In this document: in pieces, positions 13,896 through 63,302 of the stretch
Layout of the letters: each line of letters begins with the position of its first letter
Position numbering within the stretch: the stretch's first letter is position 1
Source: Prasinococcaceae sp. CCMP 1430
Lineage: Eukaryota; Plantae; Prasinodermophyta
DNA: 64,000 nucleotides
Assembly (NCBI GenBank): GCA_013416795.1
Contig: RQSC01000012.1
Location: 258,527-322,526 of the forward strand
Reading direction: 5' to 3'
Position numbers and translations under genes: made by a program
The notes under the pieces: model-generated
The model's database searches: none
What the model was told of the DNA's origin: nothing
Seen by the model: only the letters and a program-made list of their open reading frames with translations

Positions 13896-14421
13896 GGGCC
13901 CCGTCCGCTGCTCCTTGGGCCGCACGGATCGTCAGCCACGCACTTACTGGCGCCGGTGTCCTCCCCCATGCCGCGCGCGGCTTCTACGCTGCGCCCACGG
14001 CCCGCGGCCGGAAGCCCCATCGCAACCGCCGCTCGCTATCGATACCACGCGCGCGCGCGCGCGCGCGCGCATCGGGATGTGGGGCGGAGTGCCCTTTCCT
14101 TTTTTTGGAGGCTGGTCTCCCGCGGATTTGTTGCGCATATTTCCGTAATTTGTGTGCTAATGTAATATTCCTCTTGTTTCCTGATTGAATCCCGGAGTAC
14201 GGTGGATTCGACCCTGCGTTTTTGGCGGTTGGCTCGGTTGCACGCCGCGGCCGCCGTCGCGCCCGAAAGAGTACGTGCGCGCGCGAGCAGTGCGCCGACG
14301 CGTGCCGCGCTTGCACAGGGCGCACGCTGCGCGGGGCGCGCCCGGCGCGAGGGGCGCGCGCGGCGCGGCGCGGCGCAGGGCGGGCGCGGGCGGTGCGAGT
14401 GAGGGCGCGGGCGCGGCGAGT

Positions 14422-16324
14422 ATGGCAAAGAAGCGCGAGAGGGACGGCGCGGGCAAAGAGGTGGGCGGTGAGAGGGAGAAGAAGGCCAAGTCGGCAGCGG
14501 TAGGGCGCCACATCGGCGCGGTCGACGCGCCAATCGCTGACGTCCCGTTCACGACTGGCGATGCGCAGCTGGCGCTGGCTGGCAACGCGGCCCCAGCCGG
14601 AGCGCACTCTCCCAGGCACGCGCGCGCAACTTCGCGCTTTCGTGGCGTGACACATCACGTGCGCACGGGGCGCTTCGAGGCCTACTGCTGGGCCCAAGGG
14701 AGTCAGGTTTACCTGGGTGGCTTCGCCGAAGAGGAGCAAGCGGTGAGTGCGTGTGCGATGCAAGTCCGCGCGTGATGCCCTTGATGATGAAGCTAGTGCT
14801 TCGATGTGCTCGCTTTCTGACGCACCATGCCATGCCCAGGCCCTCGCCGTCGACATCGCGATGGTCAAGTTCCGCGGACTGGCGGAGGCAGCAACCCGCA
14901 CAAATTTCGACGTCTCAGGCTTTGCTGATGAACTCGGCTCGCTAGACGGGGTATCCAACGATGAGCTTGTACTTTTCCTGCGCAGGCAGTCGAAGTGCTT
15001 CGCCGCATCCCCTGCCGCGGCAGCCGCGGAAGCGGCGAGAGCAGCGTCCGCAGACGCCGATGCTTCCGGCGATGCACGCGCTGCCGCCGTGGATGCATCC
15101 GCAGGCTCCGAGACACTGGCCGGAGGCAGCAACAGCAAAGGCCTGTACGCGTATCGTGGCGTGCACCGCCTCAGCAGTGGCAAGTTTGAGGTGAGCACTT
15201 CTTGTCGCTCCTATTGCGCTTAGACCAGCCGCTTTCCCGCAGCCTTGGCGCCGCCGGTCGACCCGTTGCTGACATGTGAATCACCCCACCAACGCACATG
15301 CTACACATTGCTCAGGCGCGAGTAAGCGTCAAGGACATCACGCGCCCGATGCGCCTCAGCCGAAGGACTGTGAAGAAAAAGGGCAAGGCGAAGGCCGGAG
15401 GGAGCTCTACGGAGCGCTCGACCCCAGCCTACACCTTGCCAGTCTCGAAGGGTAGCCATGTCAAGCTCGGCACCTTTGACACGGCCGAGCTGGCTGCCAG
15501 CGCATATGACAGGTGCGCGGGGTGGAGCTGTTCGTACGCGCGCGCGCAGCGGGGGCACCATGGCACAGTCGCTGACAGAGCGCTCATCGCATCTCTCCCC
15601 CGATTCGCATCGAAGGGAACTCGTTCAGCAGCGCGGGCACCACGCGTGCACCAACTTCGGCCTCACCAACTACGAGGCTGAGATGCGCGAGCACAATCAG
15701 GCGCAACGTGAAGAGGCGGCGGCGGCCACCGCCGCGGCGAGCCTCGAGCTGATCGCCGCCGGTGGGGCACCTGACCCCAGGGCCGACCATCTCACACCCG
15801 AGGTCGGCAAGGGTCCTGGAGCGATGCACGCGGTCGAGACGGCGAAGACTACTACACTCGCGGCATTCGCATCGCCGGCCCCGTCGCCGAGCACGCCCGC
15901 CCTTTCGATAGCGCCCACACTCGCCCGCCCCAGTGCCGGCCCACAAGCGCCGCCTCTCACGTGGGCGAGCATAGGGACGACGGACGTGCACGCACAAGCA
16001 CAGCAACCACAAGTGGCACAGCTGCACGCCAAACCTGTCGCCTTCGGCGCGCACCCCAGCCATAGGGCACCGACCCAACCCCACGCCCTCGCCCACGTGC
16101 TAGCGCCTCAAGTGCGCGTCCGGGTGGACGTGTCACCCTCACAGCACCAGCCAGTACATGGCGGCACAAAGTCGGCGGCCAGTGCGAGCGCGGCAGCTGG
16201 GGGCGTGGGCCTTCCCACCGCTTCGGGCTTCGGCGACGAGGTCGATTTCGGCCTCCTGAGCGCGCTCCTGGACGACAACAGCACGCACAATAGCCCGCCG
16301 GCGGGCGCGCACACCGGCCGGTGA
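14422..16324 (+). CDS. Double AP2-domain transcription factor (AP2/ANT/WRI-like), three introns
   Basis: R1 SRFRGVTHHVRTGRFEAYCW..QVYLGGFAEEEQA|ALAVDIAMVKFRG..TNF. Linker ELVLFLRRQSKCF. R2 YRGVHRLSSGKFE|ARV..KLGTFDTAELAASAYDR|ELVQQRGHHACTNF. Confidence 0.88.
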
Positions 16325-16539
16325 AAGATGTGGATTTCAAGCGGGACAATGCCAAAATGCACTGCTGCGAGCCCGGCACACCTCGAGGCGCTGGTCGCCG
16401 GCTTCGGGGTGCATAGCTGACGCCGCACGGCGCGCGTCCAGTAATGCAATACAAGCAGCACACTGATTCAGCGCGTGTCACGCACGGTGGGGGGCAGATG
16501 CAAGTGCTCGCGATGTGCAATGCGCCCCGCCTTGAATCC

Positions 16540-17066
16540 TTACTCGACTCGGATGATGATGTGGCTGCCCGAATCAGAGTCCACGATGTCGCTGAGCTGG
16601 CCCACGTTGAGCGCAAAGCTCGCGCTCTCGAAGGCCGGTTGCATCTTCCCGCGCGCAAAGGAGCCTAGGTCACCGCCCCGCTGCGCGCTTGAGCAATCGC
16701 TGTACTTGGAGGCGAGCGCCTCGAAGGCGCGCAGGGTGTCCTCGCTCGCGCCGCCGCCCTCGGTCAGGATCTGCTCGCGAAACGCAGTCAGGAGCTTGTG
16801 CGCCTCGTCCTGTGCGCAGCAGCAGGCAAAGGGGCCGATGTCGACGGCAGCAGAGACCAGGTGAGTCGTCGCGGGCCGTCAGCGCGGGGCGCGCACATCT
16901 GACGGGGTGCGATCGTCGGATCGCACGCGTCAGGCCAGGCCCGCAGCGGCGCGCGCACCTGCGTGCGCTTCTTGATCTCGGCACCTTGCGGATCGCGCCA
17001 GCTCGCGGGCCTGCGCGAGCCCTGGTGCTTGACCAGCAAGTGGGAGCAACGCACAGAGTCGGGCAT
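16540..17066 (-). CDS. PIN1: Parvulin/Pin1-type peptidyl-prolyl isomerase, no WW domain seen
   Basis: VRCSHLLVKHQGSRRPASWRD, intron, then ASKYSDCSSAQRGGDLGSFARGKMQPAFESASFALNVGQLSDIVDSDSGSHIIIRVE* (stop at 16542-16540). An extra 5' exon is possible. Confidence 0.93.
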
Positions 17067-17583
17067 GACCCTCTGCGGAAGCACGTGTGCGCGTCAGCGC
17101 GCGGTGGGCTGCGCATGCCTCGCCCGCCCTCCAGCATACCCACCAAGCGTACACGGTCCACTCGCTCGCTCGCTCGCGCGCTCGCTCGCTCGCGCGCTCT
17201 GCCGTCCGGCCGCCCTCGCACCCACCCGACGCCACCCGACCCGATTGCCGTCGCGCACGCACCTCGCGGCCCTCGCCCGCCCAGCCCGACCCTCGTGCTG
17301 AGTGGCGCGCCGCGTGCGAGCACCGCGTACCGCGCTCAGCGCGTGCCGCCCTCCGTGACACGCCCCGCGCGCGCGCTCCCCTGCGCGCTGTTCGAACGGC
17401 GCTTTGCGTCTGGATCGGCAGCTGCGCGAATTGTGAACGAGTGCACAAATCCTGGGCTGAAGAGGGAACCTGACTCTACGGTAAACCTCAACATGGGTTT
17501 GGGTTCAACATAATGTACCGCATGGGAAACGCCGACCACGCGTGTGCATCGGGTTGCTGCTTGAGGGCGGGCGAGCGCTTCGC

Positions 17584-19425
17584 TCAGCGGCCGAGGCCGA
17601 GCGCCCTGCAGGCGGGCACCTCCCACACCCGCGCGAGGGTGTGTGCCTCGCCATTCTCGCCAAATGCGTCGAGGCCCGCTCGCACGAGGGTCTGCCGCAC
17701 GCGCGCGCAGTAGAGGTCACCGACGGCGACCCCGGCGTCAGCCATTTTCTTGTCAGCCACGGCGGAGTAGGTGCACGGCACGCCGCTGGCCTCAAGGTCG
17801 CTGGCGAGCTCGTCGTAGTTGGCACCGGCCTCATCGCTCCACACCGGAAAGATGAGCGGCACGCCGAGGCGGCCGAACGCCTCCTCGCGCCACTGTTTGA
17901 TGTGCACGAGGTGCAGGTCGCCGCAGGCGATGTCCCGGACGCCGCCGGGCAGTCGCCGCCGCGCCAGCGACAGCGCACTCGCGAGGGTGCTGGTGTAGTT
18001 TCCTCCACGATGGAGCGGAACGCCAAGGAGTGGCAAGCCCAGGTGTGCCGCCTGGCGCTCAACGTCGGCGATGGGAACCTCCTGGTGGGCGATGCGCCTG
18101 CTTGCGGCGTCAAACGTGGTGAGCAACGCCAGCTGGTGCAGCGGTCGGCCCGAGCGCACCAGAGCGCGAAGCGCCAGGAACGAGTCCTTGCCCCCTGACC
18201 ACATGAGCAGCGTCGTGCCCCCCCCCTCGCAGCGGCCGCCGGCTCCATCGCCCTCCGAGTCGCGGACGGGCGTGAGGAAGGCCGGCTGCTGGATTCGCCC
18301 TGCCTTGTCCTTGACGTTGGCGTGATCGTAGGGGCAATGGCGACACCCCGAGCCGCAGCACCTGCCGCGTGCCTCGTGCTTCAGTCGCGTCATCACGCTG
18401 TATCCAGTCTCGGGGTCGACGTAGGTGAGCTCCCCCGCCGCACACGCGCGCTCGTGGAGCGCGTGCCAGTCCTCAATGTCACCCACAGGCCCCGCATCGC
18501 AAGCGGAGCGCGGTGGCGGCACGTCAGCTCCAAGCCGCACCCACGCCTCGCCCTCGCGTGGCAGGAATGCGCGTGTCGCGGCTTGGATCGCCTCGACCGC
18601 CGCATCGTCGCCGTCCCACACGCATCGCGCCGCGAGGGCCACCCCGGCTGCGAGACTCGGCCCCGGCCGCGCGAAGTAGCGGTTCCCATCGACGGCGTAC
18701 ACCCGGCCGTCGCGCCACGCGCGCAGGCGGGACAGCGTGCCCCGCCCCGCCGCCGCGAGGGCGTCGGCGGTGTTGCGCTCGGTCCCGAAGCCACAGCACG
18801 CGACAAGCACGCAGTCGGGGTCGGCCTCCTCCACCTCATCCCAGCCCCGCGCGCTGCTCTTCGCGCCCGGTCGCGGCTGAAGCGCCGGTTGGGTGCCGCT
18901 GGCGAGCTCGAGCATCTCCGGCGTCCAGTGCCCCCCGTCGAAGGGAGGGTCGAGCCACTCGAGCAGCAGGACCGAGGGTGTCGACCCCCTGAGAGCGCCC
19001 GCCCGATCGACCGCGTCGGCGACGGCGGCGACGCGCTCGTCGAATTCGCGCCGCAGCACCGCGCCGCGATCGGGCACGCCGAGCGCCTCAGCAATTTCCT
19101 CGAAGCTCCGCGCGACCTCGGCGAGCGTGGAGGGCGACGTGGAGACGACACGCGCGCCCGGCACGCTCGAGCACGCCGCGGTGGCTGCGGCACCGCCGGG
19201 TGCGCACACGGCGCACAGGTCTTGCGTGAGTACCACGGTGGGTTCGGTCCGCGCGAGCGCCTGAGCATCGAGCGGGTAGAGGCGCTCCCCGGCCCCCTCC
19301 GCTGCGGCGCGCGCCACGGCGTCGTTGATGTGAGCCTGCGAGGCGCTCGTGTCGAGCCCCGCGCGCGTCACGCGCCGCACGCCGCGCCGCAAAGCGCAGC
19401 GCAAGGCTTGCCTCCGGACTGTCAT
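17584..19425 (-). CDS. Three-domain fusion: BtuF-like Fe/B12 periplasmic-binding domain + DUF5522-like Cys domain + Dph6-like PP-loop ATP pyrophosphatase
   Basis: Binding domain: PTVVLTQDLCAVCA, LEWLDPPFDGGHWTPEM, DPDCVLVACCGF, VYAVDGNRYFARPGP. Cys domain: HERACAAGELTYVDPETGYSVMT..RGRCCGSGCRHCPY. ATPase: WSGGKDS..GDLHL..FGENGEAHT. It is one uninterrupted frame, but the N-terminus is incomplete. Confidence 0.85.
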   Translation of the reverse strand: MTVRRQALRCALRRGVRRVTRAGLDTSASQAHINDAVARAAAEGAGERLYPLDAQALARTEPTVVLTQDLCAVCAPGGAAATAACSSVPGARVVSTSPSTLAEVARSFEEIAEALGVPDRGAVLRREFDERVAAVADAVDRAGALRGSTPSVLLLEWLDPPFDGGHWTPEMLELASGTQPALQPRPGAKSSARGWDEVEEADPDCVLVACCGFGTERNTADALAAAGRGTLSRLRAWRDGRVYAVDGNRYFARPGPSLAAGVALAARCVWDGDDAAVEAIQAATRAFLPREGEAWVRLGADVPPPRSACDAGPVGDIEDWHALHERACAAGELTYVDPETGYSVMTRLKHEARGRCCGSGCRHCPYDHANVKDKAGRIQQPAFLTPVRDSEGDGAGGRCEGGGTTLLMWSGGKDSFLALRALVRSGRPLHQLALLTTFDAASRRIAHQEVPIADVERQAAHLGLPLLGVPLHRGGNYTSTLASALSLARRRLPGGVRDIACGDLHLVHIKQWREEAFGRLGVPLIFPVWSDEAGANYDELASDLEASGVPCTYSAVADKKMADAGVAVGDLYCARVRQTLVRAGLDAFGENGEAHTLARVWEVPACRALGLGR

Positions 19426-19450
19426 CAATCACCACCAGATACGTCCGCAT
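19370..19450 (-). pseudogene. Fragment resembling the N-terminus of an alphaproteobacterial universal stress protein (USP)
   Basis: MRTYLVVIDDSPEASLALRFAARRAAR (27 codons), preceded by a purine-rich GAGGGTCGGGGCG. The frame degenerates immediately afterwards. Family similarity is recognised from memory, not by search. Confidence 0.65.
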
Positions 19451-19579
19451 CGCCCCGACCCTCGCTATGCTTTTCGTGAATGGAGAGTGCGTCACATTCG
19501 TATGAACTGCGGGCGGAGCGCACCCGCGCAAGCGGAGAGCCTAGGCAGCGACCCGCTGCGCAGCGGGGCGCTCTTCCGC

Positions 19580-57692: not shown

Positions 57693-60445
57693 CTAGGCCG
57701 CGACGGCCTCGACCTCCGCGCCCTCGGCGCCGTCCTCGTCCTTCTCCACCCAGCGCCCGTGCTCCTTGATGAGCTCGATGAGCTCCTGGGTGGCGATCTC
57801 CTGCGGAATGCCCCTGCGAACGACCTCCTTGCCCACGTACAGGTCGATCTTGCCCGGCAGCGAGCCAACATAGCCGAAGTCGGCGTCGGCCATCTCTCCC
57901 GGCCCGTTCACGATGCAGCCCATCACCGCGATGGACACACCCGGCAGGTGGCCAGTTTCCTGGGAGATCTGCTCGGTGACCTCCTGCAAATCGAAGAGCG
58001 TGCGACCGCAGCTCGGGCACGAGACGTACTCGGTTTTCACGCTGCGCATGCGGCTGCCCTGCAAGAGGCCGAACGACGCGCGCACGAGGTCGGTCTTGGA
58101 GAAGCCCTCCGCCTCGATCATCGCGCCATCGCCGAGCCCATCGCACAGGAGCCCGCCCGCGAACATGCCCGTCTTGATGAGCAGGTTGTTGGAGTCCATC
58201 GCGCCGAACGTCAGATGGTGGATCACCGGGAAGTTCAGCTTGTCGCGCGCGAGGAACTCGAACACGCGGCGGCTCGCGTGCACGCGGCTCACGCCGTCGT
58301 TGCACTTGATCATCAGGAAGATGGCGTCGAGCTCCTTCAGGCGACCGAGGGTCTCGTCGTCCTCCTCGGCCGTCAGTGTGACTACCGAGCGCAGCGCGCC
58401 CTCGGGCAGCCCCTCGCCGGCATCCTTGGCGGCCAGGGCCTCCTCGATGGTGTACAGCGCGATGGACGCCGGCACCGCGCACGCCTTCAGGTCGGCCACC
58501 GGGGCGATCACGCCGAGGCCGGCGTCCTGGAGGCGCTTGAGCGTGCGGCGCGCCTCTTGGTCGTCTGCGGGCGGCACCTCGTCGAGGATGATCGAGTCGA
58601 CCGTCGCGACGTCCTTGAAGGGCATGCCCACGGCCAGCTTGCAGCCGAGCTCCACGTAGAGGGCCTCCGGGCTGCGCAGCTCCTCGAGCGACACGCGCGC
58701 GAGCACCGAGCCGTCGCGGTGCAGCACCTGGCGCAGGTCCACGGTGTCATCCTCCTTCTGCGTCACCAGGTCGCCCTGGCGGCGCTCAAACTTGAGGTAG
58801 TCGCGCACGGTCTCGGTGAAGGACACCGGCGACTGCCACGGTACGGAGAACGCCAACGAGCGCGCGGGGGGGCGCAGGCGGCTTGGGTCAGCGCGCGCAT
58901 GGAGGCGCGCCATGGCGGGCACGGTCGAGTGCTCAGGCTAGGAGGGCACGCGAGCTCAGTTTATGGGTGGTGGTCCAGATGGTATTGTCTGCAAGGTTGG
59001 GGCTGGGATTGGTGGGTCCCTTCAAGACCCCCGCCGTTCGGACGAACGAGACTACTGGAAGCATCCTCGTCGCGTGATGCGCGGGTGCTGGGCATGGGCA
59101 AGCCGCGCGCGGCGCGGACGCGGCCACACCAGGGCGGCGCGGCGCCGGGCGCACCTTCCATCCCTCCTCGGCGGCCATGGTGCCCAGACTGCCGAGCGTC
59201 GAGCACGGCTCGATCTCGAACTCAGGGTCCTCTGTGAGCGACACGCGGATGGTGTTGCCGATGCCGTCGGAGAGCAGCGAGCCGATGCCGATGGCGCTCT
59301 TCATGCGGCCGTCCTCGCCCTCGCCAGCCTCAGTGACGCCGAGGTGGACGGGATAGTCCCAGCCCAGCTTGTACATCTCAGCGACCAGCAGGCGGTAGGC
59401 CTGCACCATCACAAGCGGGTTGGACGCCTTCATGGAGAAGACAAAGTTGTGGAAGTCGTGCTTGCGGCAGATGCGCGCGAACTCGAACGCCGACTCCACC
59501 ATGCCCGCGGGGGTGTCGCCGTAGTACGACAGCGTGCGCGCCGACAGGGAGCCGTGGTTGGTGCCGATACGGATCATGCGGTTCAGCTCCTTGCACTTGA
59601 GCACGAGCGGCGTGAAGGTCTCCTCGATGAAGTCCAGCTCCTCCTGGTAGGCCTCGGGCGAGTCGTAGTTCTTCTCCTCGAACGTCTTGCGGCCGTCGGC
59701 GTAGTTGCCAGGGTTGACGCGGATCTTCTCCCACGACTCGGCCACGAGCAGCGCCACCTTGGGCGCGAAGTGGATGTCGGCGCACAGCGGGATGTCGTAG
59801 CCGTCCTCCCAGAGGCGCTCGCGGATCTCCTTGCACGCCTTGGCCTCCCGCATGCCCTGCACGGTGATGCGCGCGAGCATGCCGCCGGCGTCTGCAATGC
59901 GCTTGACCTGCGCCACAGTGGCCTCGACGTCGCGGGTGTCGGTCGTGGTCATCGTCTGCAGGACGATGGGGTGCTCCGAACCCATTGGCACGGGACCGGC
60001 CCAGCATGTGCGCGTCTTGCGGGTCTTTGTCTGCGTCGGGTCGATGCAGTACTTGCCCTCAGGAACTGCGGGGCGGGGGCGGGGAAGGGGGTAGGAGCGG
60101 TGAGAACAGGGATGGTCCGGCGTGTGTGCCGAGGGTGATGGGAGGGGAAGGGGCGGGGGCGGCGGAGGAGCGTGTGTCAGCATGCAGCCAAGGGTGCTGA
60201 GACACCACATCACCGAGCCGAGCCGCGGCGCAGCGTCGTCGGACACCCGCAGGCAAAACAAAGCCGCAACACTGGCGTTGCTTTCGCAGCGGCCGCCGCC
60301 GCTCAGCCCGCCCACGGCCCGTGCGGGGTGCTCCTCGAGCGGCCCCCGTGGGACGCGCTACGACCGTGAGGCCACCCCCGCCGCGAGCAGCGCCGGACGC
60401 GGTGCGGCACGCCGCGGCGTTGGTGGTGCATGCCCCGTCGCACAT
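57693..60445 (-). CDS. ispG: (E)-4-hydroxy-3-methylbut-2-enyl-diphosphate synthase, long plant-type IspG (MEP pathway)
   Basis: KYC..RKTRT..GSEHPIVLQTMTTTDTRDV..ADIHFAP..IRVNPGN..IGTNHGSLS..HLGVTEAG, and C-terminal CPSCGRTLFDLQ..VMGCIVNGPGEMADADFGYVG. At least two introns; first exon and start uncertain. Confidence 0.96.
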
Positions 60446-61819
60446 AGGGTTTGCTCGTGTTTTTCCCCCCTTTTGAGTTCGCGGACCCGCCGCGCTCCGG
60501 CGAGCGCACCCAGCGTGGCGCCGCCGGCCGCTGCGTCGCGCGTGCGNNNNNNNNNNNNNNNNNNNNNNNNNNNNNNNNNNNNNNNNNNNNNNNNNNNNNN
60601 NNNNNNNNNNNNNNNNNNNNNNNNNNNNNNNNNNNNNNNNNNNNNNNNNNNNNNNNNNNNNNNNNNNNNNNNNNNNNNNNNNNNNNNNNNNNNNNNNNNN
60701 NNNNNNNNNNNNNNNNNNNNNNNNNNNNNNNNNNNNNNNNNNNNNNNNNNNNNNNNNNNNNNNNNNNNNNNNNNNNNNNNNNNNNNNNNNNNNNNNNNNN
60801 NNNNNNNNNNNNNNNNNNNNNNNNNNNNNNNNNNNNNNNNNNNNNNNNNNNNNNNNNNNNNNNNNNNNNNNNNNNNNNNNNNNNNNNNNNNNNNNNNNNN
60901 NNNNNNNNNNNNNNNNNNNNNNNNNNNNNNNNNNNNNNNNNNNNNNNNNNNNNNNNNNNNNNNNNNNNNNNNNNNNNNNNNNNNNNNNNNNNNNNNNNNN
61001 NNNNNNNNNNNNNNNNNNNNNNNNNNNNNNNNNNNNNNNNNNNNNNNNNNNNNNNNNNNNNNNNNNNNNNNNNNNNNNNNNNNNNNNNNNNNNNNNNNNN
61101 NCGCCGCCGCGCGCGCGCGCGGCGGCGCCCCGCCGCGTCGGCCGGTGTCAGCCGGCGCATGCTTTCGGGGCGTAAATAGGGTTTAGTCGATAGTAGGGTT
61201 TGCACAATAAGGCGCAGCTCAGCTCCAGCGCAGTGCAACGTGCCCACCGCACGGCTGCGTACAATCAGATGGTACGGACACACAGACAGACTTTTGAGGA
61301 CAGAAGAGCTTTCGCGGCGCAACCTTTGCTTTTCGCAGCCGCCGCGGGCCACATGTTTTTTTGGAGGCGTTTTGAACTGTTTGCGCGTTCGCCGGTTCCC
61401 CGAAGGCGCGCGCGGTCGGTGCGCCGCCGGCGCGGCCGCCGGCACACCGCAGCTTGCGCGCTGCGCTGCGCGACGCCCAGCGCGCCGAACCGACGCACCC
61501 ACCTCTCGCGCGCGAGCGCACCGCACCGCGCGCTTCCGGCCGCGAATTACCCCCGTTTTCCCATCCGCAAAACCCCGCGCGTCGCCCTTCGCGCCGACCT
61601 CCGAAACGCGCCTCGCGGAACGCGTTTCGGCGCGCGCGCGCGACGCGCACGCCGACCCCGCGGATGGAGCGAGTGAGGGATGGAATGAGATCTCACCTCG
61701 CCGCAGCCCACCATCGGATCAGGTTTCGCAAGTCACTTTCACGTGGAGAAAACAACACTGCGGGATGCGCATGTGGTGGGCCCAGGGAAACCCGACCAAC
61801 GGGGAGTGACCACTCCGAA

Positions 61820-63302
61820 CTAAAACCGAACTGAACCGAACTGAACCGGACTGAATTGCACTGAACTGGCGCGCGCGCGCGCGCGCGCCTCACCGCCACC
61901 CACTTGCGGCCGGCCCAGCCGCCGCGGCGGCGGCGAGATCCCGAAAGCGGATCGGAAAGCGGCGGCCTCGCGAATGGACTCGATCCAGTCGAAGCCTCCG
62001 ATGGTCATCAGCGCGGTGACGCTCAGCACGGCGGCGATGGCGTCCTGCGTGAGGGCGGACATGCGCGGCGGCGGCGAGCCCTCAGGCTGGCCGCCGGACC
62101 GCCAGGCCTCCGTCCACTCCGCCGCCTCGTCCTCCGCGCTCATCGCCTGCGGAATTCAGAAGCGAGGGACGGGCGCGGCAGCGCGCCATCGTGCGCGCGG
62201 GCGGGGGTGAGCACGCGAGCGCGCGCGCGTGCGCGCGCAGCGCCAGGACACGGAGCAAGCGCCCCAACGCAGGTGCGCATCTCGTGCGCTATGGCAACCG
62301 CACGCACGGCGCTGCGCACGGCGCCGCGCGTGTACGCACCGGCATCGGGACGAAGCCCCGTTCTGCGAGCGAAGCGACGAGGTCTTCCATGTGCAGAACC
62401 CCGTACAGGAGCGCCGCCGAAGGCACCGCCCCCACTCCCGCTGCCGAACCTGCCGCGGACTGCCTCGCGAGCGCCGCGTCGAGCGTGCGCAGCGCGGCGT
62501 CGTTGCGCGCTCGAATGACCACCGCATCGGCGCGCTCGCTCTGGCCTGACACGACGAGCTGCGCGAGCGCGAGCCTGCGTGCGCCCTCCAGGTCGAGTCT
62601 CGCCGCTGCGCGCACCGTGGCCGCCAGCGCAGGCGCGGGTCGCCCTCCCTGCCACGACCAGTCGAGGCACAGCAGCGCCGCTTCCGGGGCCGGCGCCAGC
62701 CAGCACAGCGCCCGCAGCGCCCGCGCACCCGCCGTGGCGACCGCGCCAGCAGCGCGGCTCCCTGCCGCGTCGCTGCGCGAACTCGCGCCGGGCCCCGCCC
62801 AAAGGGCCGCCCACGCAGCCCCAGCCGCTCCGCCGCGATATGTGCTCGTCCCCCCCCGCCCCTGGTCGTCCTGCAGCGCGCCCAGCTCCGCCGCGCTCAG
62901 ATCCGCCACGTACCACCGCGCGGAGCGGTACGCCTGCTGTAGCGCATCGAGCTGCGCGACGAGCCCGTGATTCGCGGCGAGGCGCCGCTGCTGCGCGGTG
63001 GGGTACAGGTCGCACGAGAGCTGGCGCAGGGCCACGGGCGTCGCCTCGATCGACCACGTGAGGCTCTCGTCCGCCACCATCTCGAAGAGCGTCTCCCGCG
63101 CGCCCGCGCGGCAGCGGTCCGCCAGCGCGGCGAAATACTCGCTCGTGCCGACGTGCACGCACCCGACAAGCTCGACCCGCGCGCCATCATCGCGCCGCAC
63201 CAGCGTGCGCGCGCGCGTCTCGAGCACCCACGCCCCTCGCTCGGCATCCTCCAGCCGCAGGCGCACGCTCTGCCCCGCCGCCGCGCCCCCCGCCGCGGCC
63301 GC
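61820..63302 (-). CDS. Conserved uncharacterised protein, TraB/GumN-like fold by motif recall; 5' end cut at the N at 63303
   Basis: VLETRARTLVR..VELVGCVHVGTSEYFAAL..LFEMV..QLDAL..WYVADLS..VIRARNDAAL..ALLYGVLHMEDL..GFVPMP, intron (~62325-62150), then AMSAEDEAAEWTEAWRS and a hydrophobic segment. The 3' end may splice again at ~61889. Confidence 0.65.

Follow-up and report, generated by a model that had tools for sequence, protein, structure and literature searches.

Within the DUF71 family, a subgroup named DUF71-B12 was distinguished by the signature ENGE[F/Y]H, the corresponding Dph6 motif being EGGE/DxE188 with a glutamate that is predicted to be catalytic (de Crecy-Lagard et al. 2012, Biol Direct 7:32; PMC3541065). 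In that study, 75 of 102 DUF71-B12 genes adjoined genes for B12 transporters, such as btuCDF, and 18 of 102 adjoined cbiB; DUF71-B12 and CbiZ were strictly anti-correlated in bacteria, and a role in the salvage of pseudo-B12, possibly in place of CbiZ, was proposed. We found no experimental follow-up of this prediction in the literature. BtuF and the haem binders PhuT, ShuT, HmuT and RhuT share two Rossmann-like lobes, a long backbone helix and a cleft between the lobes. These periplasmic binding proteins (PBPs) are secreted and operate with the permease and ATPase of type II ATP-binding cassette (ABC) importers. The algal B12 uptake protein CBA1 has a BtuF-like predicted fold as well; it carries a signal peptide, is associated with the endoplasmic reticulum and the plasma membrane, and has no enzyme domains. 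Here, we describe a gene of the green alga Prasinoderma coloniale that joins a BtuF/haem-type binding domain, the mini-domain DUF5522 and a DUF71 ATP pyrophosphatase in one frame. The gene lies on the reverse strand of a 64,000-nucleotide stretch of contig RQSC01000012.1 (assembly GCA_013416795.1, Prasinococcaceae sp. CCMP 1430), referred to below as the window, and its product is the P. coloniale representative of a conserved family of cytosolic three-domain enzymes with intronless genes.

The listed open reading frame (ORF) occupies 17584..19428 (-) and comprises 614 codons and a stop in a single uninterrupted frame. Domains were called with Pfam at the gathering scores and with NCBIfam equivalog models at their own cut-offs. 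The original prediction, made from the letters of the window, had described a single-frame, intron-free triple fusion, and all three Pfam domains were indeed found above the gathering score: Peripla_BP_2 at ORF residues 94-247 (35.3 bits against a cut-off of 27.5, covering profile positions 83-232 only), DUF5522 (PF17653) at residues 325-371 (78.5 against 25) and Diphthami_syn_2 at residues 406-598 (37.8 against 23.2). The coordinates of the motifs quoted there (TQDLCAVCA, the VACCGF region, CCGSGCRHC, SGGKDS and ENGEAH) were verified as well (Table 1). A word-indexed protein search returned 365 homologues at E<=0.001. Among these, the top 120 had E values from 0 to 2e-129 and lengths of 477-854 residues, mostly about 600-780. 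Peripla_BP_2 and DUF5522 were present in nearly all homologues holding a precomputed Pfam record. Taken together, the Pfam domains, the motifs and the 365 homologues indicate that the frame is a real gene and that the fusion is real.

The binding domain was analysed on an AlphaFold2 (AF2) model of an intact orthologue (mean pLDDT 89.4), in which residues 20-349 form two alpha/beta lobes connected by a long helix (169-197). Foldseek searches with these residues retrieved PhuT, RhuT, BhuT, ShuT, HmuT and BtuF of Vibrio cholerae and Escherichia coli (TMt 0.70-0.81, E values 1e-10 to 4e-7), with TMt values of 0.70-0.74 for BtuF and up to 0.81 for ShuT. A profile built from fused and split homologues matched the PDB entries 4m7o (9e-17), ShuT (2e-13) and V. 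cholerae BtuF (3.5e-13), so homology to BtuF and the haem-binding PBPs is also detectable in sequence (profile E values 1e-13 to 1e-7). Judged by the model, the domain belongs to the tetrapyrrole-binding branch of the class III PBPs, and the predicted fold would suit haem and B12 alike, without discriminating between them. The placement in the Fe/B12 superfamily proposed from the letters alone thus holds for the fold, while the haem binders match at least as well as BtuF. In alignments, H48, C50, Q119, C122 and C125 (numbered as in the model) were invariant, and C262, W208, W218, W246 and R304-P305 were nearly so. In the model, all of these conserved residues directly follow beta-strands, a position that by analogy with BtuF, whose contact loops we take as the guide for placing residues on the cleft, corresponds to cleft-lining loops. 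The invariant His, Cys, CxxC and Cys would accordingly be expected to line the ligand cleft. The invariant His-x-Cys, Q-x-x-C-x-x-C and Cys of these loops have no counterpart in BtuF or the haem binders.

The family also differs from BtuF and the haem-binding PBPs in lacking both secretion and importer partners, as well as in being fused to an enzyme. No signal peptide and no hydrophobic N-terminus were detected in the Tara scaffold protein (P0001), the EukProt model of the host gene (P0121) or the bacterial split proteins, and strand 1 begins after only some 20 non-hydrophobic residues at the true N-terminus. FecCD/ABC genes were not found among the recurrent neighbours of the bacterial loci. 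The earlier suggestion of an intracellular protein without a signal peptide or partner permease is therefore supported, and it extends to the intact N-terminus and to the bacterial split forms. With CBA1, the fusion protein shares the BtuF-like predicted fold, the occurrence in eukaryotic algae and a connection to B12, but it is unlike CBA1 in all the other features listed above, and the two showed no sign of a common family.

For the C-terminal ATPase domain, model residues 453-664 matched PH1257 (2d13) in Foldseek (TMt 0.68, root-mean-square deviation 2.8-3.2). The SGGKDS and ENGExH motifs are intact. Across alignment A1 (44 homologues), the E, G, E and H of the ENGE-H motif were invariant, with His fixed at the position of Dph6 E188; the window copy carries Ala at the F/Y position of ENGE[F/Y]H, and the protein ends 16 residues past ENGEAH. 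The nearest relatives of the domain almost all contain DUF5522, which identifies DUF5522-DUF71 as the core unit. The algal family and the published DUF71-B12 subgroup have in common SGGKDS, ENGE[F/Y]H and the presence in bacteria (which lack diphthamide). A physical linkage to B12 uptake genes, as in the published subgroup, was seen in part of the bacterial loci (the Erythrobacter-type loci described below), where the gene of a BtuF-like protein lies behind a cobalamin riboswitch and, in one locus, near a TonB-dependent receptor gene. In contrast to the published subgroup, DUF5522 always precedes the ATPase, a BtuF-like domain is fused to it, and there are eukaryotic members; the fusion, DUF5522 and algae are all unmentioned in the description of DUF71-B12 (PMC3541065).

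DUF5522 (model residues 371-440) is modelled as a helix, a hairpin and a second helix followed by the CCGxGCRHCP knuckle. Residues H, Y, D, T, C, C, G, G, C, R, H and C were invariant across 57 diverse DUF5522 sequences. A separate AF2 model of the domain had a pLDDT of 78.5, and no PDB match to the fold was obtained (Foldseek; best VIA-align Z 2.5). The CCGSGCRHC knuckle is presumably a metal site, for Zn or an iron-sulfur (Fe-S) cluster, judging from its Cys/His pattern. Literature searches returned nothing on DUF5522, on DUF6580 (a membrane protein family discussed below) or on the three-domain fusion.

Table 1. Features of the three-domain gene and of the adjoining segment in the window.
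Feature	Position	Strand	Basis and remarks
Supported coding part	17584..19391	-	ORF codons 14-614 and stop at 17584-17586; residues 64-664 of the intact protein; intronless
BtuF/haem-type class III PBP-like domain	18532..19389	-	Pfam Peripla_BP_2, AF2 model, Foldseek, profile against PDB
TQDLCAVCA loop	19201..19227	-	Gln and CxxC invariant in fused and split homologues alike (alignments A1, A2)
ACCGF loop of C-lobe	18787..18801	-	Second Cys nearly invariant
DUF5522 mini-domain	18259..18468	-	Pfam PF17653, AF2 model
CCGSGCRHC knuckle	18334..18360	-	C, C, C, H, C invariant in 57 diverse sequences (alignment A3)
DUF71/COG2102 PP-loop ATP pyrophosphatase, non-Dph6 type	17587..18222	-	Pfam Diphthami_syn_2, NCBIfam, Foldseek
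PP-loop SGGKDS, predicted to bind the ATP alpha/beta-phosphates	18181..18198	-	S, G, K, D, S invariant, first G nearly so (A1)
ENGEAH motif, family consensus ENGEFH	17641..17658	-	DUF71-B12 signature in place of Dph6 EGGE/DxE188
Unsupported segment	19392..19543		19392-19505 without support; 19506-19541 only a 36-nt repeat match (DNA run X1)

The 5' end of the gene is unreliable in the window, and the start is the part of the original prediction that was not confirmed. An exact-sequence look-up identified P0121 as EukProt PRCOL_00002510-RA of P. coloniale, which is identical to the window ORF across 579 residues after RRGVRRV. The supported coding part differs by only three amino acids from P0001, encoded on the Tara scaffold L001. 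In blastn comparisons, the window and L001 were collinear over 14247-19391 at 98.2%, with no match beyond 19391, and the two diverge at a common GC-rich 20-mer. The N-terminus MATAAGPP..RVASLLPAATEVVGALGARDALVACTHECDACPDAAGMAAAV is present in P0121, P0001 and five of the seven other members of the 90%-identity cluster of P0001 (P0122-P0126). The extra 63 N-terminal residues (MATAAGPPPD..RVASLLPAATEVV..THECDACPD.., including SLLPAATE and HECD) hold the first two strands of the binding domain, helix 1 and the invariant HEC loop, none of which is present in the shortened window copy, and they had no match anywhere in the 64-kb window by tblastn or sensitive blastn. An upstream first exon behind an ordinary intron was rejected on the same searches. 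Since the whole 664-codon coding sequence is one ORF in L001, the gene is intronless.

A contig of DNA run X1 matched 16800-19391 with 0 mismatches and stopped about 12 nt further, the next contig started at 19544, and depth arithmetic on this run gave zero depth at 19392-19505. All 14 DNA runs together contained 0.94 of the sampled words. Because of the divergence from L001, the zero read-contig depth and the 63 missing residues, the window looks like it contains a misjoin or rearrangement at 19391; the contig hole alone is no proof of one. The first 13 codons of the listed ORF (TTG-ATG..., 19390-19428) lie outside the conserved protein and are not part of it. In another frame, 19373-19450 encodes a universal-stress-protein-like start (MRTYLVVIDDSPEASLALRFAARRAA). 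The unsupported 152-nt segment (19373-19543 (-) region) links the shortened gene to a neighbouring ePHD gene.

The fused form was found in the green algae Prasinoderma, Pycnococcus provasolii, Pseudoscourfieldia marina and Chlamydomonas sp. UWO241, in the pelagophyte Aureococcus anophagefferens, in the diatoms Fragilaria crotonensis, Thalassiosira sp., Stephanocyclus, Skeletonema potamos and Detonula, and probably in oomycetes (an Atlas cluster in which Oomycota is the most frequent phylum). Among bacteria, it was present in Polyangiaceae, Myxococcales and one proteobacterial metagenome-assembled genome (MAG). No names from T. pseudonana or Mamiellales appeared in the cluster look-ups. A comparison of 80 bacterial loci revealed three layouts: the binding domain fused to DUF5522-DUF71; a binding-protein gene directly upstream of a DUF5522-DUF71 gene (Nitrospinota-type MAGs, as well as Erythrobacter and Sphingomonadales); and DUF5522-DUF71 alone (Erythrobacter paralogues, Gemmatimonadota, Verrucomicrobiota and others). 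The proposed check for adjacency of the bacterial homologues thus gave a positive answer in several loci, and the occurrence of the modules as neighbours in some bacteria and as fusions in others speaks for a functional connection of the two. A maximum-likelihood tree was built quickly from the DUF5522-DUF71 part (66 rows, omitting six loci without the motif, midpoint root only). The fused proteins all fell into a single clade (SH-aLRT 97), in which the eukaryotes formed one group (91) beside L004 and a mainly myxococcotal group, with no resolved order among these. The single fused clade indicates that the fusion arose once and crossed the boundary between bacteria and eukaryotes already fused. 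The Rosetta-stone fusion of prokaryote-type modules that had been proposed is therefore genuine, but it is not specific to the alga, as it recurs as one clade in Myxococcota, a proteobacterial MAG and many eukaryotes. Two-domain DUF5522-DUF71 proteins without the binding domain also occur in eukaryotes (P0223, P0230, P0250 and P0285, from Chromera velia and MMETSP transcriptomes), and UniRef names these diphthine-ammonia ligase. An Atlas cluster of Pseudomonadota proteins of about 562 residues carries Peripla_BP_2 and the N and C parts of Diphthami_syn_2, with DUF5522 not listed; it may represent a second, independent fusion of a binding protein with DUF71.

A new connection to B12 came from Rfam scans of 32 bacterial loci for the cobalamin riboswitch RF00174 at the gathering score. 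In the Erythrobacter-type clade (Sphingomonadales and unclassified MAGs), seven of seven scanned operons containing the binding protein (L022, L026, L028, L029, L034, L066 and L070) carried RF00174 in the sense orientation with 83-98 bits. The riboswitch of each of these loci stands ahead of a membrane gene of the DUF6580 family, the binding-protein gene and the DUF5522-DUF71 gene, in this order, and it ends about 40 nt ahead of the likely start of the DUF6580 gene. In a further locus of the clade (L064), a single RF00174 lies on the opposite strand, and on the short contig L027 none was found in the only 491 nt available upstream. No RF00174 was found in nine loci with stand-alone DUF5522-DUF71 (or on three further short or partial contigs, L015, L016 and L075), nor in eight loci of the Nitrospinota-type or fused layout. 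Novosphingopyxis baekryungensis DSM 16222 (L066) and L070 are arranged alike and have a second riboswitch at the same position, which in L066 stands ahead of a convergent TonB-dependent receptor gene. We regard the riboswitch evidence as strong. Recurrent btu, btuCD or cob neighbours were not found in the 80 bacterial loci by ORF clustering and Pfam analysis of representatives. The neighbours were heterogeneous and included multicopper oxidase, amidohydrolase, VWA/YfbK, cytochromes c, HipA and rhomboid genes, and HupE/UreJ near the fused gene of L004 gives a weak hint. The B12 gene context that the original prediction had asked for is therefore present as a riboswitch in the Erythrobacter-type operons, and it is missing as btu/cob neighbourhoods and from the other loci.

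The first gene behind the riboswitch (L066:9285-13984, L070, L022, L026, L028, L029 and L034) encodes a membrane protein of roughly 175-210 residues, assigned to DUF6580 (PF20221, 92.7 bits for the representative in L070). It is a candidate inner-membrane corrinoid transporter. Only the automatic names of its Atlas clusters, CbiM family and ECF S component, point in this direction; no PDB match was obtained, and the searches gave no support for a likeness to BtuM. In L064, a cobalamin riboswitch of 123 bits immediately precedes the gene of a 379-residue BLUF protein (L064:473-1859 (-)), which diverges from the operon of DUF6580, binding protein and DUF5522-DUF71; the match of this protein to a B12-binding domain is weak and below threshold (19.9 bits against a cut-off of 32.1).

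More than half of the surveyed algal species need B12 made by prokaryotes. P. coloniale itself has been reported to be auxotrophic for B12, as it has no B12-independent methionine synthase (PMC7455551), which answers the question of METE status that had been raised for the host. In the algal genomes analysed by Helliwell et al., cbiZ and cbiB were present in none, and remodelling was tied to COBT, COBS and COBC (PMC4850488); the absence of cbiZ and cbiB leaves corrinoid-processing steps in algae without assigned enzymes. A 2026 preprint lists no enzyme that removes the lower ligand in Chlamydomonas. The fusion family is not included in a 2020 preprint on horizontal gene transfer in diatoms or in a 2024 survey of algal B12 genes, and it is not among the B12 gene sets of recent surveys (CBA1, CBLA-J, METH, MCM, RNR-II and COBT/S/C). 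Literature searches combining diphthamide synthase, cobalamin and phytoplankton returned nothing.

Based on sequence and context, we tentatively propose that the protein is a corrinoid salvage or repair enzyme that forms amides on B12 precursors or derivatives, a reading whose chances we place just short of even; that it has a B12 role of some kind is rather probable, and the amide-forming chemistry taken by itself is about half as likely as that. The binding domain, its export signal lost, would act in the cytosol and capture a corrinoid that is incomplete, damaged or unsuitable. On the precedent of Dph6 and other PP-loop enzymes, the PP-loop domain would convert ATP to AMP and pyrophosphate and adenylate a side-chain carboxylate of the corrinoid, and ammonia or an amine would turn the acyl-adenylate into an amide to give a usable cobamide, for instance by re-amidation of deamidated cobalamin or of a cobyric-acid-type precursor. 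The Cys/His knuckle of DUF5522 may bind a metal in a structural or redox role. A broader formulation, which we consider unlikely, is that the whole family consists of cytosolic corrinoid-editing enzymes of B12-using eukaryotes (algae and probably oomycetes) and some bacteria. The de-secreted BtuF-like domain would then pass a non-functional corrinoid (pseudocobalamin, cobinamide, cobyric acid or deamidated B12 being candidates) to the DUF5522/PP-loop module, where a side-chain amide would be rewritten at the expense of ATP. If true, this would explain B12 salvage and repair without CbiZ or CbiB and would add a new step to cobamide metabolism. The corrinoid link suggested in the original prediction thus stands in outline, owing to the riboswitch, the ENGE[F/Y]H signature and the auxotrophic host, although most bacterial DUF5522-DUF71 genes have no B12 context.

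Several observations weigh against a corrinoid-amidating enzyme. The top Foldseek matches of the binding domain are haem binders, with BtuF behind them, and a bacterial split orthologue scored 15.4 bits against the cut-off of 234 of the BtuF equivalog NF002894. The archaeal models PAB0415 and TTX_0299 gave only about 20 bits (NCBIfam), from which the algal family would appear to be at least a clade distinct from the published DUF71-B12 proteins. The riboswitch loci all come from a single bacterial clade and so count as roughly one evolutionary observation, set against 0/8 Nitrospinota-type or fused loci and 0/9 stand-alone loci. To these are added the absence of recurrent btu and cob neighbours and the incomplete binding domain of the assembled window copy. 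An Fe-S centre or some other metal could also be accommodated by the Cys-rich cleft and the Cys/His knuckle, which leads to the possibility that the ligand is not a corrinoid but an Fe-S cluster, a metal, haem or a different tetrapyrrole. In this case, the PP-loop domain would carry out a different adenylation-dependent reaction, such as sulfur insertion of the TtuA or LarE type, and the riboswitch of Sphingomonadales would reflect secondary recruitment. The haem binders PhuT, RhuT, ShuT and BhuT at the top of the fold matches speak for it, as do the cleft residues (His-x-Cys, CxxC and Cys) and the C, C, C, H, C of DUF5522, which resemble metal or Fe-S ligand sets, the fact that most DUF5522-DUF71 genes stand alone beside multicopper oxidase, amidohydrolase or VWA genes, and HupE/UreJ near the fused gene of L004. 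Yet the riboswitch occurs in 7/7 scanned Erythrobacter-type operons with the binding protein, two of which lie beside a second riboswitch, and an outer-membrane receptor under riboswitch control was shown for one locus of this type. Moreover, ENGExH is common to DUF71 genes clustered with btuCDF and cbiB, and genes for sulfur donors or the haem pathway do not recur in the neighbourhoods. On balance, we consider a non-corrinoid ligand doubtful. A replacement for CbiZ, in which the nucleotide-loop amide of pseudocobalamin or cobinamide would be cleaved with the assistance of ATP as the first remodelling step in algae, appears more doubtful still. Amide oxygens can be activated by PP-loop enzymes, QueC among them, but we know of no PP-loop amidohydrolase. 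Cleavage would also still require CbiB-type re-ligation in algae that are without cbiB. In its favour are the anti-correlation of DUF71-B12 with CbiZ and the role proposed from it (PMC3541065), the remodelling performed by some of the analysed algae in spite of lacking cbiZ and cbiB, and the presence of the gene in Aureococcus, which uses pseudocobalamin with 5,6-dimethylbenzimidazole (DMB) only at very high DMB (PMC4850488). However, the family is wide in Thalassiosirales (Thalassiosira sp., Skeletonema, Detonula and Stephanocyclus), an order whose member T. pseudonana, not among the names retrieved, does not remodel (PMC4850488).

Two further explanations are very improbable. The three-domain frame could be an artefact, either a chance ORF or a misassembled join of separate genes. 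Chance ORFs are plentiful in DNA of about 70% GC, the content around this ORF, and many of them are long, so the length of an ORF by itself is no proof of a gene; in addition, the 5' end rests on the unsupported join. However, hundreds of proteins of independent origin, some of them from bacterial genomes, have their domains in the same order and with the same junctions, and the 0-mismatch DNA contig runs across 16800-19391. A contig of the RNA-type run X15 covers 17883-18731 with 0 mismatches, that is, the end of the binding domain, the whole of DUF5522 and half of the ATPase. The contigs of the RNA-type runs X15 and X16 (a label that is itself a guess) span 17474-19304 and do not extend over the flanking intergenic DNA. 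The gene is thus probably transcribed as one unit, which argues against separate transcripts, an objection foreseen for the fusion. At the domain junctions, the recurrent architecture and the contig cover rule the artefact out, the 5' join excepted. It is equally hard to maintain that the protein is the diphthine-ammonia ligase (DPH6) of the alga. The Diphthami_syn_2 match and the public name "Diphthine--ammonia ligase" of the homologues in Pycnococcus, Pseudoscourfieldia, Aureococcus and Chromera point that way, and the domain shares with Dph6 (PF0828, yeast YLR143W) the fold, the ATP-binding residues of the PP-loop and, presumably, the first half-reaction, adenylation of a carboxylate. In contrast, Dph6_archaeal (TIGR03679) scored 23.9 bits against a cut-off of 197.3, and the predicted catalytic E188 is replaced by His in ENGEAH. 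Pfam found no RidA domains in the ORF, whereas many eukaryotic Dph6 proteins (yeast, Arabidopsis) carry a C-terminal RidA/YjgF part. Dph6 has other domain partners, and the closest relatives of the algal protein are bacterial, from organisms that lack diphthamide. Score, motif, missing RidA and bacterial relatives effectively refute the DPH6 identity.

The original prediction had regarded the fusion as the best candidate for an undescribed system. This overstates its novelty, as a role of non-Dph6 DUF71 proteins in B12 salvage was already predicted in 2012 (PMC3541065); what is new here is a eukaryote-containing form of the predicted DUF71-B12 kind that is fused to DUF5522 and a BtuF-like domain. 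The family provides a first experimental handle on that prediction. Its members, widespread cytosolic proteins in which a binding domain of the tetrapyrrole type is coupled to an adenylating enzyme, are candidates for an algal step in salvage, repair or remodelling. The analysis also corrects the annotations "diphthine--ammonia ligase" and "iron complex transport substrate-binding protein", which are spreading in databases, and flags DUF5522 and DUF6580 as B12-linked domains of uncharacterised kind.

Some features of the surrounding DNA were recorded in passing. The 797-residue model P0121 is wrong at its 3' end, where it splices from the ATPase (...FGEN, before ENGEAH) into the downstream gene and thereby fuses two genes. 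The merged gene encodes a Pin1-type parvulin (window 16788-17084 (-), ..SHLLVKHQGSRRPASWRD..). The 3' flank at 17134-17300 contains a dispersed short GC-rich repeat with a core at about 17161-17197, where the summed contig depth in DNA run X1 was about 2100, compared with about 150 in the flanks, and many contigs end. No RNA genes were found in the whole window with Rfam. An ORF at 14747-15223 (+) contains an AP2/ERF-type motif (..YRGVHRLSSGKFEV..) and probably belongs, as an exon, to the gene of a transcription factor with an AP2 domain. The GC content dips to 0.50 at 60001-62000 and is 0.62-0.74 elsewhere in the window.

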